This document shows positions 5,275 through 43,563 of a stretch of 51,798 nt of DNA, piece by piece. Origin of the DNA: Bigelowiella natans CCMP2755 (lineage: Eukaryota; Protista; Cercozoa); the NCBI GenBank assembly GCA_000320545.1, contig ADNK01001920.1, positions 1-51,798 of the forward strand, given 5' to 3'. The notes below the pieces were generated by a model. The model did no database searches, was not told the origin of the DNA, and was given only the letters and a program-made list of their open reading frames with translations. Every line of letters starts with the position of its first letter. The first letter of the stretch is position 1. Position numbers and translations under genes: made by a program.

Positions 5275-5421
5275 ATAGTTTGGAATCATTTTATTGATTT
5301 AAATGAAATGCAACGATGATGATGATGATGATGATAATGATGATGATGATGATGGTGGTGTTGGTGCTGAGAATGGAGCAGTCTTCACACGTGCGTGGCG
5401 AACGATGAATGTTACGGTCGC

Positions 5422-5458
<37 letters not shown>

Positions 5459-6071
5459 ATCGAATGAATGCGTAGCGCTCGTTCAGCACGTAAATATCGA
5501 TATATAATCCAAAAAAAATTGGGGTTTTTGAATACGCCATCAGTCGCGACAAACGCAATCAGTGACGACGAATGCCTTGTGCGTTGAAAGGCATAGAGGT
5601 TACAGAAGCGCGCAGTGTCGTAGAGATATATTGCTATATGTGTAATAGTTTATGTTACTATCAATGCTGGAATGGCACTGTGAAGCTGCATCTAGTAGGT
5701 TAGCGCTGTGTAGTTTGTGATTGATCTTGGCGGCAGACAATGCGCCGATAACTATGCCAGCGCTGGGACACCAATGCATTCATCCCCCTCGATCAGAGCT
5801 CTGGAATTTATAATGGTTGTGCATGACAATCTATAACAAATACATACAATCTAGCAATAGGCGAATATGTGAAGCCCGTCCACTTAAGGAACACTTTGCA
5901 CTCACGTTGCGCCCCCGTTGCATGCACACATGCACGCTGTGAATTGGTTGCAGGTCATGATGTCACAAACGACAGCAGATAATACAATTCTGCGTAACGG
6001 TTGTTCTTCTATTATTATATCAGACCAAAATTTACTTGAATTCAGTATCTTATCTGAGATATCGCCTCTGT

Positions 6072-6149
6072 TGCATTTTTTGTTTCTCAGCCTTCATCGC
6101 CAGCATTTAATTCAGCCGTTTCAGATGTCGGTTTCATATTAGATATGCA
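6072..6149 (-). promoter_or_regulatory. Candidate eukaryotic SECIS element (type II-like) in the 3' UTR of the MerB-like gene
   Basis: Minus strand reads UGCAU-AUCUAAU-AUGA-AACCGACAUCUG-AAA-CGGC-UGAAUUAAAU-GCUG-GCGAUGAAGGC-UGAG-AAACAAAAA-AUGCA. AUGA (6137-6134) is followed by 12 nt and then AAA. There is an apical mini-helix CGGC/GCUG, CAUC/GAUG and CC/GG pairs in helix II, a closing UGAG (6089-6086), and helix I UGCAU/AUGCA. Folded by eye; helix II has mismatches. Confidence 0.65.
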
Positions 6150-6286
6150 CGTGTTAAGCGAACGAATCAGGACCATTCTAGAAAATCGTACGATTTTCGT
6201 AGCCTCTGCTCTATCTTTCCATTCCTGCACCCTAAAGAAGTCATTAGCAAGATGATATTTCTAAAAGTTGGGGCGAATTTAACAAT

Positions 6287-7171
6287 TTACGGAAGTTCCC
6301 AAAATGCCGAGGTTAGGCCCACAGAATGGAACTTAGCACGTATCTCCTCCACCGATTTTCTCTCGAAATGAGGGCATGCTCGGTTTCCGTAGAACAGCGA
6401 TGCTAATGCTGCTAACTGCTCCTCGCACACAATCGCGTAAGAGGACACTGCATTTTCGTCGATGTGTTTTCCGAGCTGTTCTTCATCTGCGAAGATGGCA
6501 AGTCTTTCATATCACGTGTCCACCAGGTCGTCATACCACTCTCTCAACGGAGCCGTAAAACATACCAATGCCTTCGGGTGCGAGGTGGAAATAATCCTTC
6601 CCTCGTGTAAGCTCATGTGTATTGATTCCCCGCTCTGGTGGCAAGTGGTGCTGATATAGCCCTTTTCGGAAAGGTTGTCGCCAGTATGTCCCAGTATGAA
6701 ACACAATCCCCATGTATCCCAAACTCAATTTCCAAATCTTTGAACGTATCTTGTGTTTCCTTGTCTTCCCTGATCTAACGCTACCCCCCTCTCTTCGGAG
6801 CCAAAGAATTGACCCAACTCTTGACCCTCCTCCATTCCGGCCTGGACGATATCAGCGCCAACAGCAGTCTCACAATAAGGGATTAGCGAGTTCTCTAGGC
6901 GAGTAGCAGCCGCTGACACAGCCTTCACGTCCAGAAGAGCGTAATGTGGGGTGGCTAGGTTGGAGAAGGGATGTGACATGAGGATCTGGTTAGTAAGCAA
7001 ACCGCTCGTGCTCCTAGAGAGAACGACATCGTGATCGCATTCCAGCTTGCGCAACGCAGCCCAGGTCTCTGCTTTCGAGAGACCAAACGCCTTTGCAAAC
7101 TGAGCCCAGTGTGGAGCTCGGCCGGACTTCAGCAGCCAGGCGTAAACAAAGTTGCGCCCTGGGGGCGCCAT
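6287..7171 (-). CDS. MerB-like (alkylmercury/organomercurial lyase family) protein, 294 aa, with two in-frame UGA codons (predicted Sec149, Sec220)
   Basis: One frame from ATG 7171 to TAA 6287-6289, interrupted only by TGA at 6725-6727 and 6512-6514. Translation: GRAPHWAQFAKAFGLSKAETWAALRKLECDHDVVL...ILMSHPFSNLATPH...FGN*VWDTWG...STTCHQSGESI...VCFTAPLREWYDDLVDT*YERLAIFADEEQ...QLAALASLFYGNRACPHFERKSVEEIRAKFHSVGLTSAFWELP. MerB-family motifs lie on both sides of each stop. Confidence 0.85.
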
Positions 7172-7441
7172 TCGCGTCGCTCGAGCAGAGGTGGTTCCGG
7201 CAACTTTCTACAGCTCTTGGTTGTCATAATTCATAAAAAGGAGAAAAATGAAATAATGCTTTTAAATGTAAAAAATGATCGAAGAATTACCAGTATAATC
7301 CAGGGTGCTTTGATAGTACGCCAAGCAAAATCGGATGTCGCTGGAAATAATATCGTGAGTAATTGTGCTTCCTCCGTCGAAGAAATATCTTAGAAATTTC
7401 GTCCTAAAATATCCCAAATCTCACACACACGTCCAGGTCCA

Positions 7442-37230: not shown

Positions 37231-37556
37231 TGTAGCGCGTACCACTACGCGGGCACAAGTCACGTGCGACAACAAAGGGGTTGTCGCGGATATAGAATAT
37301 AGATAACGTAGATATTAATACAGCATGGGCACGTGGGTTCCGGCGGGACTCATGGCAGCACACCGGAAGTGTGCTGCCCCACGTGCGGCGGCATTCGCGA
37401 AAGCTTCGCGAATGATTACGCAGTGCACGATTTAATAAAAATATAATCTTTAATAAAAATAAACACAACTCTTCAAAAGGAAGCAAACGTGCCTTCCCCC
37501 CCCCCTGCCTACTTGTGCACGTAGCGCCTCGGCCTGTGAACACCTTACGCGCAACA
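37231..37556 (+). repeat. 5' LTR
   Basis: TGTAGCGCGTA...TACGCGCAACA; identical by eye to 43615..43940. Confidence 0.95.
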
Positions 37557-37595: not shown

Positions 37596-40436
37596 ATGTC
37601 ACAGCAGCTAGAAGAACAGCAGGACTTTGGCTCGCAGGCCGTGCAAGGGCACGAGCAGAAACAGGAAAGGAAGGGCGATACGGACGCTAAGGAAGGAGGA
37701 GGAACACCTCCACAGGCACCGCCGGGACCAGCACCCGGGATTAAGAAAGCAGATGCAGCAGCAGAGGCACTGGAGAACTTCTACGAGGCGGACGACGAGG
37801 ACGTGGCCGCCGAAAGCAAGAAGGTCGTAATGGCATTACGAGCCTTGCGACCCAGGGCGAGCAACTACGCCAAACTGAAAGTATCGATAGAATACAAGTA
37901 TCAGACACATGATGTTTGGGCAGCTATCATGCAGGACATCATGGATTACGAAGCAGACTTACCTCCAGAGTGGGCAGCTTTGTTTAGGAACGACGGGGGT
38001 CTGGGCGCCTCGCGGGGGACGACCCAGAGCACCGTCAAGCAGCAGCAGCCGGTACAGCGGAACACCCAGTTCATGTCTGTTAAAACAGCACCGGTTATGA
38101 TAACGAAATACAACGGGAAAAGAGGTGAGGCAAGGAGGTGGTGGAAGAACGCTAGGAGTATACTCTGCGACTTTACCCCTAACCCCACCGAAAACGACAA
38201 GCTCAAATGGCTAGCTATAATAAAGCAAGCCATGGACCTTTACGAGACAGGCAGGACCCGGATCAGGCAGCTAGAGAAAATACACACTACAGTTAGTGGG
38301 CTACGAGACGTTGAGGCGATAATGAAGGCTTTTGTAAATGAACAGGATGCTAACTCCCTACCCCAGGCTATTAGAAAATACAGAGCAATGATGCAGCATG
38401 AGAGAGAACCTGTTAGAGACTTTGCCACGCGCTTCCAGGATATGATCGACGAACTACATGATTTTAATTACAACACAGGTGATGATCAGGCAAGGTTTGA
38501 AGAGTTCAAGTTAAAGATAAAGGAATCCACTTACGTTACGGAGAAAGGCTACACCACGATGGAGGCAGCAGTGCAGGCTATATCCCTACGCGAGCAGGAG
38601 CAGGACCGCAAGTTTACCAGCCCTAAGGTACCTGGCATAGGAAACATTAACGCTATTAAGCCGCAGCGAGACTGGTACAAGGACAGGGAAGGTAACCGAC
38701 GTTGCGGATACTGCTCACGTAAAGGGAAACACACCGCTAAAGACTGCAGAGACAGGAAAGAAGGACGACCCAGGATGACGATCAGGCAGCTCAACGAACA
38801 CTACGAGAAGTTAAAGAGAAAGAAAGGCAGAGGACAAGGATATAACAACAGCAAATGGCAAGGCAGCAACAACGGGAAGAACAATAAATATAAGAACAAA
38901 AAGCAGAACAGTATCAATGCTATACAGCAGCAGATAAACGGAATATTAGATCACCTTAAGCAGGCGCCGACGAAGACAGCAGTACCAGCAACGCAGGACC
39001 AAGACAAGCCCATGACCCTAGACGACATAAAGAACTTAGGAGTATGCAACATTAATGACGAAGACGCTAACAGGACTATCAAAGTTGCTATGACCAAGGT
39101 TAAAGTTAAAGACAGCTACGGAGACTACAAGAAACTACCTGCCCTTTGGGATAGTGGCAGCATGCCGAAGTCCTTCATAAGCCTAAGCACAGTAAGAAGG
39201 TTAGGACTATTGGATCAAGTGACTAAGAAAGAACGTAAATATGCTCAAGCAGACGGAAGCTCTTCCATGAAGACCGTCGGTGAGCTAATGCTAAAGCTAC
39301 AGATACCTGGCAGCGACGCGGAGACCCAAATCAAGACCCGAGTAGCCATGACTTTATCCATGGAACTACTCCTCGGACAGGATGCCCTAGAAAAATTAGG
39401 GGGGATCATATCATTCTACAATCACAAGATATACTTTGCTAAGTTGCCAAAGAAGTCAGGCAGGACCATCAGCCAGAACATGATACGGCTTGACGAGTGG
39501 ACCTCTGAGTCAAGCGTTAATGCGTTAGAGTTTATGGACCTAGCGGACAACAAGCTACCTACACCTACCGAGCTACGGAAGAAGAACCCCGGCAAGACCA
39601 TCCGACAGATAACGGAGCTACTGGACAAGACCCCCCCAGCTGATGATTGGGATATCGACAAGGGCAAAAAGTACATTAATAAAATATTAAACGAGAAGTA
39701 CTCTGACATCACCAAGCCGACGACGAAGCCCTCCAGCAAGCTTACCCCAGTAAAGATCGAGCTAAAGAAGGGATACGAAGAGTGCATCATCAATGACCCA
39801 GAACATAGGCGACCGGAAGCGGACTGGGAAAAGATAGAGTGGCAGATCAATGAATGGGCAAAGGAAGGGAAGATAGAGCCAAGCAACTCACCATGGAACG
39901 TGAGACATGTGCTAGCTAAGAAACCTACTTACCCTTTCTTCCGCCTGGCGCACAACTTCATCCGCCACAACCGAGTAATAAAGAGGATCCAGACACCTAC
40001 ACCAAGGATAGATGACGTTATTGAACACGTCATAGGATACAAATACTACTCTTCCCTAGATAAAAATGAATCATACATGCAGACACCCATCCACAAAACC
40101 TCCCGCCCCATTACCGCGTTCTCCAGCAGGCACAGGAAGTGGCACTTCGTCGTATTCCCTTACGGCCTAAGCATATCAGGGGATGCGTTCAGTAGTCAGA
40201 ACTACAGGGCATACACACATGATGGGATGGCGTCTGTGTTGTGGGTGTTTGTGTTTGTGTATGTGGATGATGACATAATATGTACCAACACAGTCGTCGC
40301 TCAGATCTTCCTCCTGGAAAATATATTTATTAGGTTTGCACACTTCGGTTTTACTATAACTACTCCTCGGACAGGATGCCCTAGAAAAATTAGGGGGGAT
40401 CATATCATTCTACAATCACAAGATATACTATGCTAA
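37596..40436 (+). CDS. Retrotransposon gag-protease-partial RT, frameshifted at the duplication junction (40357/40358)
   Basis: Zinc knuckle CGYCSRKGKHTAKDC, aspartic protease ALWDSGS, RT motifs FPYGL and YVDD. An out-of-frame tail follows AHFGFTI. Confidence 0.9.
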   Translation: MSQQLEEQQDFGSQAVQGHEQKQERKGDTDAKEGGGTPPQAPPGPAPGIKKADAAAEALENFYEADDEDVAAESKKVVMALRALRPRASNYAKLKVSIEYKYQTHDVWAAIMQDIMDYEADLPPEWAALFRNDGGLGASRGTTQSTVKQQQPVQRNTQFMSVKTAPVMITKYNGKRGEARRWWKNARSILCDFTPNPTENDKLKWLAIIKQAMDLYETGRTRIRQLEKIHTTVSGLRDVEAIMKAFVNEQDANSLPQAIRKYRAMMQHEREPVRDFATRFQDMIDELHDFNYNTGDDQARFEEFKLKIKESTYVTEKGYTTMEAAVQAISLREQEQDRKFTSPKVPGIGNINAIKPQRDWYKDREGNRRCGYCSRKGKHTAKDCRDRKEGRPRMTIRQLNEHYEKLKRKKGRGQGYNNSKWQGSNNGKNNKYKNKKQNSINAIQQQINGILDHLKQAPTKTAVPATQDQDKPMTLDDIKNLGVCNINDEDANRTIKVAMTKVKVKDSYGDYKKLPALWDSGSMPKSFISLSTVRRLGLLDQVTKKERKYAQADGSSSMKTVGELMLKLQIPGSDAETQIKTRVAMTLSMELLLGQDALEKLGGIISFYNHKIYFAKLPKKSGRTISQNMIRLDEWTSESSVNALEFMDLADNKLPTPTELRKKNPGKTIRQITELLDKTPPADDWDIDKGKKYINKILNEKYSDITKPTTKPSSKLTPVKIELKKGYEECIINDPEHRRPEADWEKIEWQINEWAKEGKIEPSNSPWNVRHVLAKKPTYPFFRLAHNFIRHNRVIKRIQTPTPRIDDVIEHVIGYKYYSSLDKNESYMQTPIHKTSRPITAFSSRHRKWHFVVFPYGLSISGDAFSSQNYRAYTHDGMASVLWVFVFVYVDDDIICTNTVVAQIFLLENIFIRFAHFGFTITTPRTGCPRKIRGDHIILQSQDILC

Positions 40437-41351
40437 GTTACCAAAGAAGTCAGGCAGGACCATCAGCCAGAACATGATACGGCTTGACGAGTGGACCTCT
40501 GAGTCAAGCGTTAATGCGTTAGAGTTTATGGACCTAGCGGACAACAAGCTACCTACACCTTCCGAGATACGGAAGAAGAACCCCGGCAAGACCATCCGAC
40601 AGATAACGGAGCTACTGGACAAGACCCCCCCAGCTGATGATTGGGATATCGACAAGGGCAAAAAGTACATTAATAAAATATTAAACGAGAAGTACTCTGA
40701 CATTACCAAGCCGACGACGAAGCCCTCCAGCAAACTTACCCCAGTAAAGATCGAGCTAAAGGAGGGATACGAAGAGTGCATCATCAATGACCCAGAACAT
40801 AGGCGACCGGAAGCGGACTGGGAAAAGATAGAGTGGCAGATCAATGAATGGGCAAAGGAAGGGAAGATAGAGCCAAGCAACTCACCATGGAACGTGAGAC
40901 ATGTGCTAGCTAAGAAACCTACTTACCCTTTCTTCCGCCTGGCGCACAACTTCATCCGCCACAACCGAGTAATAAAGAGGATCCAGACACCTACACCAAG
41001 GATAGATGACGTTATTGAACACGTCATAGGATACAAATACTACTCTTCCCTAGATAAAAATGAATCATACATGCAGACACCCATCCACAAAACCTCCCGC
41101 CCCATTACCGCGTTCTCCAGCAGGCACAGGAAGTGGCACTTCGTCGTATTCCCTTACGGCCTAAGCATATCAGGGGATGCGTTCAGTAGTCAGAACTACA
41201 GGGCATACACACATGATGGGATGGCGTCTGTGTTGTGGGTGTTTGTGTTTGTGTATGTGGATGATGACATAATATGTACCAACACAGTCGTCGCTCAGAT
41301 CTTCCTCCTGGAAAATATATTTATTAGGTTTGCACACTTCGGTTTTACTAT
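39364..41351 (+). repeat. Tandem duplication of a 994-bp unit (39364..40357 and 40358..41351)
   Basis: AACTACTCCTCGGACAGG...GGTTTTACTAT occurs twice back to back, with about 7 substitutions between the copies. Confidence 0.93.
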
Positions 41352-43563
41352 TAGACTGCAGAAGTGTACATTCCTAGCTACAAGAATCAAGTGGTGTGGA
41401 TATTACCTGGAGCAAGGCCGCATCACCCCAAACCCCGAGAAAGTAGCAGCACTACAGCAAGCCCCTAAACCTAAGAATGCAAAGGAGTTAAAGTCATTCT
41501 TGCAGACTGCAGCTTGGATACTACGTAGGTTCTCCCCTACCTACGCTAGGACTGCAGCTGCTTTTACTACTGCTTACCGGAAGGAGAACTCTGTAGGCCT
41601 CAGCTTCGCTAAGGTGTGGGCCAAGGCTGGCCTTGATGCCCACTTCGATAACCTAATAAAGTTATGCAGCAACACCCTATTGAATGCTAAGCTAGACACT
41701 ACTAGACCAGCTACCCTATGGACAGACTGGTCTAAGCTAGGTATGGCTGCTGTACTTACCCAAGACCAGCAGATCATACGGGTGTGGGGCAGGGCCTGCA
41801 CAGCAGCTGAGGCCAAGTACAGCCCTACAAAAGGAGAGTATAAAGCCATGACTGAGGCGCAGAGGAAACTAAGATACTACCTGCTGTCGGTGCCCAGCTT
41901 CACCTTAATGACTGACCACAAGCCCCTCCTAGGCATCGACCGCAAGCTCGAAGCGCCTAACGATGAGTATGCAGCTATGAGGGCGGACACGGAAGAGTTT
42001 AGGGACAAGAGGACAGTGGTCTACGCACCAGGAGACAAGCAGCTTGCTGACTATTTCAGCAGGCTGTTCGAAAAGAAAGTCCCTACCCAGGTCACCCCTA
42101 TGGTTAACGCGATTACCTTCGAGGACGGCGACTTCCTGCCTGAGCCAGAGGAGCTCCAGCACCTTCAAGAACACCTGGATAAATACAAACACAAGCATGA
42201 GGTACTTAGTGATAGGATATATGTATACACTAATAATGTTAGGCGTACCTACGTGCCACGGCGGACCAGGGGAGCCCTTCTCTTTACCGCCCATGGACCT
42301 GCACACGTAGGAGAAAACCATATCACTGCTCTACTCTACCATTACTACTGGCCCTACAAGCTAAAAGAGATAAGGACATACCTGCGTGGCTGCAGGTGCT
42401 CCAGCTTGAAGGCGGCAGGCGTCGCCACCAAGGAGTCCAGCAAGAGCCGTGCATCTAAGAAAATCAAAGCAAGGAACTTCTTAGATATCGTGCAAATTGA
42501 TGTTTATAAGTACGATGGCTATCACTACCTTACCTTCGTTGATGTGGCCACTGGAAAGTGCTGGGTTAAAAAGATTATCAAGGTCAACGTTGCTAAGAAG
42601 AACAAAGGCTTATATAAGCAGAGGCTTACTAACTGCTACCGTACCTGGGAGTCTGAGCTCCAGGCTATCCCTGATGAAGTTAGCATAAACAAGATACCAA
42701 AGAAGTTACATGTGGATAATGAGACCTCTCTTCTACAGCTACCACACCCTAATATTGATGCCTCACCTGTACACTATGCCCAGTCCAACTCCAAGGTAGA
42801 GCGACTCCACCGCACCTTGGCCAACCTAAGCAGGATAAATAGCACCACACCAGACAAGATACAAGGGTTAGTAAACGACACCTTCACGTCTGGGGGAGGT
42901 ATCAAGGATAAGGAGAGGGAAGAAGGCGACGACAACGACGACGATACCGAGAGCGAAGACGAGAAGGTCCCGTACGATGGCCGAGTTCTAAAGGAAGGAC
43001 AGTATGTTAGGGCCAAGGTAAATCTGAGATCGAGAAATAAACAAGACCCCTTCTGGGGTGGCGTTGCAAAGGTTACCGAGAGGAAGGGGAGGAAGCAGTA
43101 CTACATCTATGATGGGAACAGGGTCACCTTGCGCCACATCAGTCACCTAAAGAATTATGATATCGGTGAGAAGCTCCTAGAGGATGTTAAAGTAAACCCT
43201 ACTGTGTGGGAGCGAGCAATGCCTTGTTTAGGACCCCGACCTAAGTTCGATGTGGAATATGGAAACAATAAGGTCAGGGTGAACGACGATTGGCGCATGA
43301 AGATTGTCTATCTAGGCTACCCTGGATTACGAAATATGGAGAGGGTAGCTATGAAAATAAAGGACGGAAAATATCAGCTACTCTACCTAGCTGTTCCCGA
43401 CTTACCCTTTGAGCACTGGTATAAGGTCCTGGGGGACCTTGATGCAGAGGGCTGGTATGGACACGAACCTAAGGACGAAGGTGAGTTCTGGGTAAGCGAC
43501 AAAGGAGATAAGGTTAGAGAGGAATCTATTACCTGGTGGTTGGTGAAGTTCCGAAAGCGATGA
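40474..43563 (+). CDS. Retrotransposon pol: RT, RNase H, integrase and a C-terminal extension
   Basis: YVDD, KCTF, RNase H (WTDWSKLGMAAVL, YSPTKGEY, TDHKPL, ADYFSR), integrase (HGPAH...CRC, QIDVY, HVDNE, SNSKVERLHRTL) and an SH3/GPY-F-like segment RHISHLKNY. Confidence 0.92.
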   Translation: MIRLDEWTSESSVNALEFMDLADNKLPTPSEIRKKNPGKTIRQITELLDKTPPADDWDIDKGKKYINKILNEKYSDITKPTTKPSSKLTPVKIELKEGYEECIINDPEHRRPEADWEKIEWQINEWAKEGKIEPSNSPWNVRHVLAKKPTYPFFRLAHNFIRHNRVIKRIQTPTPRIDDVIEHVIGYKYYSSLDKNESYMQTPIHKTSRPITAFSSRHRKWHFVVFPYGLSISGDAFSSQNYRAYTHDGMASVLWVFVFVYVDDDIICTNTVVAQIFLLENIFIRFAHFGFTIRLQKCTFLATRIKWCGYYLEQGRITPNPEKVAALQQAPKPKNAKELKSFLQTAAWILRRFSPTYARTAAAFTTAYRKENSVGLSFAKVWAKAGLDAHFDNLIKLCSNTLLNAKLDTTRPATLWTDWSKLGMAAVLTQDQQIIRVWGRACTAAEAKYSPTKGEYKAMTEAQRKLRYYLLSVPSFTLMTDHKPLLGIDRKLEAPNDEYAAMRADTEEFRDKRTVVYAPGDKQLADYFSRLFEKKVPTQVTPMVNAITFEDGDFLPEPEELQHLQEHLDKYKHKHEVLSDRIYVYTNNVRRTYVPRRTRGALLFTAHGPAHVGENHITALLYHYYWPYKLKEIRTYLRGCRCSSLKAAGVATKESSKSRASKKIKARNFLDIVQIDVYKYDGYHYLTFVDVATGKCWVKKIIKVNVAKKNKGLYKQRLTNCYRTWESELQAIPDEVSINKIPKKLHVDNETSLLQLPHPNIDASPVHYAQSNSKVERLHRTLANLSRINSTTPDKIQGLVNDTFTSGGGIKDKEREEGDDNDDDTESEDEKVPYDGRVLKEGQYVRAKVNLRSRNKQDPFWGGVAKVTERKGRKQYYIYDGNRVTLRHISHLKNYDIGEKLLEDVKVNPTVWERAMPCLGPRPKFDVEYGNNKVRVNDDWRMKIVYLGYPGLRNMERVAMKIKDGKYQLLYLAVPDLPFEHWYKVLGDLDAEGWYGHEPKDEGEFWVSDKGDKVREESITWWLVKFRKR

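Follow-up and report, generated by a model that had tools for sequence, protein, structure and literature searches.

A candidate form-2 SECIS hairpin downstream of a MerB-like gene with two in-frame TGA codons in Bigelowiella natans

Selenocysteine (Sec) in bacteria is decoded by a SECIS that lies within the coding region. The eukaryotic selenoproteins SelL and SelP contain several Sec residues each, and their SECIS function resides in the 3' UTR. A selenoprotein that resembles MerB has been described from anaerobic bacteria, namely SaoL, in which a CU motif at the second site holds the single Sec (bioRxiv 10.1101/2022.07.06.499078; NF040728). In the searchable literature, this bacterial protein is the only MerB-like selenoprotein. 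Selenoproteins with multiple Sec residues are also found in algae, and these, for example PDI_e with its GUGUU motif, provide a precedent for the use of one SECIS by several UGAs (PMC7539508). The same survey of algal selenoproteomes predicted a total of 23 selenoprotein genes in Bigelowiella natans and does not mention MerB (PMC7539508).

The locus considered here is carried by contig ADNK01001920.1 of B. natans CCMP2755, of which positions 1 to 51,798 (hereafter, the window, meaning the whole stretch of DNA analysed) have the appearance of nuclear DNA, with microsatellites and ~47% G+C. Identical 70-nt stretches at 37353 and 43737 of the window (minus strand), 6.4 kb apart, adjoin open reading frames at 37596-40436 (946 aa) and 40474-43563 (1029 aa), which are probably tandem paralogues. 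The MerB-like gene and its transcript comprise the following features:

6287-7171, minus strand: MerB-like selenoprotein coding sequence, intronless, 294 codons including two in-frame TGAs (translation, transcript, Pfam, orthologues)
6725-6727, minus strand: TGA1, predicted selenocysteine in the MerB Cys96 column, motif GN-U-xWD (orthologue alignment)
6512-6514, minus strand: TGA2, predicted selenocysteine in the MerB Cys159 column (orthologue alignment)
6289-6287, minus strand: stop codon TAA (translation)
6054-6286, minus strand: 3' UTR to the end of the transcript contig, 233 nt (transcript contig L001, covering 7211-6054)

With MerB (PF03243; PDB 3F0P, 5C17), the encoded protein has in common the N-terminal domain and catalytic core, the C-x-x-D motif, and the second Cys position, but both cysteines are predicted to be replaced by Sec: U-V-W-D occupies the position of Cys-x-x-Asp (Cys96/Asp99) and a second U falls in the Cys159 column. 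Its likeness to SaoL consists of a MerB fold with selenocysteine at a metal-binding cysteine position. In contrast to SaoL, it has two predicted Sec residues, no CU motif (no Cys adjoins either Sec), and a candidate eukaryotic SECIS in the 3' UTR; the SaoL model NF040728 gives the protein 13.5 bits against a cut-off of 140. As in PDI_e, SelL, and SelP, more than one UGA per frame would be recoded via 3' UTR elements. Unlike in proteins of the PDI_e type, the two Sec residues are not part of one short redox motif but are 70 residues apart (the UGAs are separated by 213 nt), and a single active site is predicted to bring them together.

The transcript contig L001 (1158 nt; JGI sample 3300017095) aligns colinearly and without gaps to 7211-6054 of the window and differs from it by 3 SNPs, indicating that the gene is without introns and that the TGAs are present in the mRNA. 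This contig carries both TGAs as well as the entire hairpin described below, which lies 18 nt from the contig end. The gene is present as a single copy, and a search of the B. natans genome for a paralogue found none. In sequence comparisons, the three pieces of the read-through protein were searched and aligned separately and were never joined. The Pfam MerB model (PF03243) scored the 70-aa middle piece alone at 22 bits (E 1.8e-4; cut-off 27), a PDB sequence search with this piece returned no match, and no relatives emerged from a word search that used the C-terminal piece by itself. From the first piece, farther, full-length bacterial homologues were reached, with Pfam MerB scores of 47-99 bits, and the Cys-containing homologues P0041, P0033, and P0025 exceed the cut-off of that model. 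In an exhaustive profile search, 14 of the 17 nearest clusters (at 50% identity) end in ...GN, i.e., the underlying gene calls were cut at TGA1. Public gene calls likewise stop at TGA1, resulting in a 148-aa product, and an exact look-up of the 148-aa product of the window gave no match. Taken at face value, calls that end at TGA1 would fit a decaying pseudogene with TGAs that truly terminate translation and a hairpin devoid of function. This is exceedingly improbable given that identity of 43-50% is maintained past each TGA among orthologues from distant species, that the C-terminus (FWELP) is common to all of them, that the gene is transcribed, and that the frame is intact in two strains, the coding sequences of which differ by one synonymous and one Q/E change.

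Both TGAs are found in the same columns in the full-length orthologue contigs L004, L027/L028, L053, and L054, which represent four other marine eukaryotes, and TGA1 is retained in shorter orthologue contigs. Specifically, the TGA1 column contains TGA in L002, L004, L025, L026, L027-L029, L053, L054, and L055, while the TGA2 column contains TGA in L004, L027, L028, L053, and L054 and TGG in L055. In bacterial homologues from the MerB family, Cys is encoded in the column of TGA1 and one of C, R, or W in that of TGA2; the Cys of P0041 in the latter column occupies the same alignment position as the second catalytic Cys of MerB2 (PDB 5c17). The orthologue L055 shares 96.9% DNA identity with L004 but carries TGG (Trp) at the position of the second TGA (L004:643-645). 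This substitution, along with the W, R, or C of bacterial homologues at site 2, is compatible with decoding of the UGAs without Sec, for example by near-cognate read-through as Trp, in which case the hairpin would have no recoding role. Such decoding is nonetheless very improbable: site 1 is TGA in all eukaryotic members seen and is occupied by Cys in bacterial members, the alga is rich in standard selenoprotein genes that bear a SECIS, a SECIS-like hairpin is kept in the orthologues (L055 included), and the W, R, and C codons are each one base from TGA, a pattern that secondary loss of Sec would produce. The proximity of all three codons to TGA suggests repeated loss of the second Sec site within the family. 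Moreover, since site 2 varies across the wider family (U, C, W, R), classical MerB chemistry should not be assumed for its members. A hydrophobic leader resembling a signal peptide is present at the start of some orthologues (L004:67-110, L002:129-190, P0003, and P0005), and the B. natans protein, P0008, P0009, and P0013 begin directly at MAPxxRNF; the localisation of the family, as judged from these N-termini, may differ between lineages.

The comparative evidence makes Sec decoding, as predicted for both sites of the MerB-like gene, close to certain, and a SECIS must then exist in its mRNA; the gene needs one, given that both TGAs and the coding sequence downstream of each are conserved. The initial annotation had portrayed the locus as a bacterial-type gene placed under eukaryotic recoding. 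The MerB fold agrees with the first part of that description, but marine eukaryotes carry the Sec form widely, and the gene is for this reason not a one-off import.

The candidate for the SECIS is a hairpin in the 3' UTR with the following parts:

6072-6149, minus strand: candidate form-2 (type II) SECIS hairpin (sequence, MFE fold, pair probabilities, strict descriptor)
6149-6145 and 6076-6072, minus strand: helix I, UGCAU/AUGCA, 5 bp, with internal-loop sides of 7 and 9 nt
6134-6137, minus strand: AUGA, 5' half of the SECIS core quartet (sequence)
6119-6121, minus strand: unpaired AAA, 12 nt past AUGA (sequence)
6101-6118, minus strand: apical mini-helix CGGC/GCUG, 4 bp, 10-nt loop (fold, pair probability 0.98-0.99)
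6118-6115 and 6104-6101, minus strand: CGGC arm and GCUG arm of the mini-helix (sequence)
6086-6089, minus strand: UGAG, 3' half of the core quartet, with GA at 6088-6087 (sequence)

The minus strand of 6149-6072 reads as the initial annotation had stated, with UGCAU/AUGCA, AUGA-N12-AAA, UGAG, and a mini-helix, and its 3' arm between GCUG and UGAG consists of GC, GAUG, AA, GG, and C. The core quartet AUGA/UGAG is closed by the flanking pair A6133-U6089 and is placed so that tandem G.A/A.G pairs can form. Helix II has standard pairs at 7 of its 10 positions, the exceptions being an A.C and a tandem G.A/A.A, and these are the imperfections that had been pointed out before. The hairpin starts 138 nt past the TAA stop, close to the ~140 nt first given, on the strand of the gene, and the assembled transcript contig places the whole element within the mRNA. 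The minimum free energy structure of 6160-6060 (RNAfold) is exactly this hairpin, although its z-score is a modest -1.35. When three sequence contexts were folded with a partition function, pair probabilities were 0.95-0.98 for the paired segments of helix II and 0.98-0.99 for the mini-helix, and that of helix I depended on context, ranging from 0.1 to 0.99 with the flanks folded. In the second strain, the hairpin sequence is identical, and the sole SNP of the UTR, at 6156, is just outside of it.

The assignment to the type II pattern holds in that the geometry is that of form 2. With form-2 SECISes (GPx, GILT-like, DsbA-like; RF00031), the hairpin has in common AUGA...GA, an AAA 12 nt on, a mini-helix, a helix I below the loop, and a location on the coding strand of the 3' UTR. 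It differs from them in its weaker helix II (7/10 pairs, a 2x2 purine loop, and an A.C), in its 10-nt apical loop, and in being unscored by RF00031 and by models trained on the species. The SECISes of GPx, GILT-like, and DsbA-like genes in the same genome have AUGA, a spacing of N12-13, AAA, and a mini-helix of 4-5 bp, as in the hairpin; an in-frame TGA is present in the GPx and DsbA matches and absent from the GILT match. One GPx SECIS of the genome contains a tandem purine mismatch in helix II, and the GILT SECIS is as AU-rich as the hairpin and has a 9-nt apical loop. In a reference alignment of 9 SECIS elements, helix II is 92% paired as opposed to 7/10 in the MerB-like hairpin, which would be the weakest SECIS of the set.

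All five orthologue contigs that extend past the stop codon have one SECIS-like hairpin each, located 20-170 nt downstream:

L004, 1057-1117: SECIS-like hairpin
L027, 997-1065: SECIS-like hairpin
L053, 974-1018: SECIS-like hairpin
L054, 1011-1063: SECIS-like hairpin with a GUGA core
L052, ~491-540: SECIS-like hairpin

These single hairpins match the suggestion of the initial annotation that one SECIS would serve both UGAs. Across their length, the contigs L004 and L055 diverge at 3.1% of positions, but no difference falls in the ~95-nt stretch that holds the SECIS, and the hairpin is kept in L055 too. The hairpin of L052, the closest relative by C-terminal identity, contains a 2x2 internal loop in helix II; a 2x2 loop is likewise found in the B. 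natans hairpin, one position lower in helix II. A search for a chlorarachniophyte orthologue with a UTR found none. The GUGA core is present in the L054 hairpin (1011-1063), downstream of a MerB-like orthologue, and in a SECIS-like hairpin of the B. natans genome (L005:1146-1197, minus strand; G000:C2359) that follows a GPx gene with a TGA in frame. Additionally, genes for MsrA and GPx, with an in-frame TGA each, are arranged head to tail on one strand at G000:C3223:15212-19316 (L011, L014). Only one clear SECIS was found for this pair, downstream of the GPx gene, and the pair may represent a fusion or a shared arrangement.

The need for a SECIS in the mRNA does not in itself identify this hairpin as the element, and several scans bear on the alternative that the hairpin is a chance structure and that a different element of this mRNA, whether overlapping, non-canonical, or further downstream, acts as the SECIS. 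A loose energy scan for AUGA cores over 103.6 kb placed the hairpin 11th among 82 sites, and 5 of 400 dinucleotide shuffles of the UTR contained an equally good site. When extended down to 5250 with AUGA or any NUGA core, the loose scan yielded nothing better than the hairpin, which is also the only canonical SECIS candidate in the transcript-supported 3' UTR. A strict form-2 descriptor was then defined by AUGA, 12-14 nt to AAA, seven or more in-register pairs among 10 positions, a minimum length of 4 bp for the mini-helix and of 5 bp for helix I, and helix I loops of 3-10 nt, its thresholds being tuned with the hairpin already seen. Over 103.6 kb of the window, the hairpin was its only match. 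In 230 kb of other loci, it matched only the SECISes of GPx, DsbA, and the L004 orthologue together with copies of the MerB-like hairpin, and in 334 kb of reversed sequence it had 0 matches. A total of 3 matches were obtained in 4.14 Mb of block-wise dinucleotide shuffles of the window, which corresponds to ~1.7e-4 chance hairpins with all features per 233-nt UTR; because the thresholds were set after the hairpin had been seen, the true chance level is higher than this figure, and it stays small.

One element that could take the place of the hairpin overlaps it, with AUGA at 6097-6094 and GA at 6021-6020. This element has 9 consecutive pairs in helix II, an A-run at the right distance, and the best match in the UTR to one of the covariance models described below (R2, 5.5 bits). 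However, 4 of its 9 pairs are G.U, its apical part is 54 nt long, its 3' arm (6030-6019) is not covered by the transcript contig, which stops at 6054, its pair probability in the ensemble is 0.00, and it failed the strict descriptor. Candidates with AUGA 5958 or GUGA 5966 were likewise dropped, the grounds across these alternatives being poor helices, a place beyond the transcript contig, or zero pair probability. The occurrence of non-AUGA (GUGA) cores in the genome and in one orthologue leaves some room for a non-canonical element, as does the outcome at the selenoprotein-family loci L012, L014, L020, and L033, where a SECIS was sought and none was found; against this, the NUGA-core scans down to 5250 produced no better candidate. 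Taken together, a working SECIS elsewhere in the mRNA is unlikely, and the hairpin at 6149-6072 is probably the functional SECIS of the MerB-like mRNA.

The failure of the hairpin in every covariance model is a further point for a SECIS elsewhere, and its weight depends on how these models perform in B. natans. A check with Rfam SECIS models, as had been proposed at the outset, was negative: no SECIS match arose when all 4227 Rfam families were searched against 5300-7300 and against the whole window, and RF00031 (SECIS_1; gathering score 35 bits) gave no match at E<=10, whether in 2 kb or in 141 nt (6040-6180). As a control, the clear GPx SECIS of the same genome (L007:2103-2180) obtained only 12.9 bits with RF00031, which over the whole 91-Mb genome had a single match, sub-threshold at 24.8 bits. 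Models were also built from 5 (R2) and 9 (R3) reference SECISes. Neither aligns the full hairpin, and the top partial score in the UTR was 6.7 bits. Among SECIS-like hairpins left out of training, model R2 recovered that of L004 and those downstream of the GPx genes of L005 and L006, while R3 scored held-out, strong-looking SECISes at 6-12 bits and missed two, with noise in the window reaching 15 bits. A MAFFT alignment of eight SECISes was discarded for its incorrect structure, a model from 2 sequences (R1) was overfitted, and a weak R3 match inside the coding sequence (L001 721-805) lacks the GA. The negative results from covariance models weigh little, since RF00031 and R3 barely score good SECISes and noise in the window is high. 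Screening for SECISes with Rfam is close to blind in the B. natans lineage. The best new genome-wide matches to R2, G000:C2111:74220-74280 (25.8 bits; a 10-bp helix II with AUGA, AAA, and GA) and G000:C2538:117743-117800 (24.9 bits), may mark unannotated selenoprotein genes.

The initial annotation had also regarded the hairpin as independent support for Sec decoding. The hairpin is consistent with such decoding, but it is mostly the gene that lends support to the hairpin, and not the reverse. If the hairpin at 6149-6072 is the SECIS, its AUGA/GA core would form a sheared G.A/A.G kink-turn to which SBP2 would bind, and SBP2 would recruit eEFSec with Sec-tRNA(Sec), leading to insertion of selenocysteine at both UGAs. 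One SECIS element would in this way serve the UGAs at 6727-6725 and 6514-6512. The product would be expected to have two selenols at both metal-binding cysteine positions of the MerB fold, where MerB holds mercury, and these are predicted to meet at one active site.

The family that the hairpin would serve appears to be undescribed. It is reasonably likely that this family represents the first described eukaryotic MerB-like selenoprotein, widespread in marine protists, in which both metal-binding Cys are replaced by Sec and which is decoded in this alga via one unusually weak SECIS with a 2x2 purine loop in helix II. Because current SECIS models miss elements of the B. natans lineage, its selenoproteome is probably under-counted. 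If the proposed role is true, the SECIS is the missing piece that makes a gene with two apparent stops a complete, expressible selenoprotein gene, and a eukaryotic enzyme with two selenols at the mercury site of MerB would bear on the handling of methylmercury or other organometals by marine plankton.
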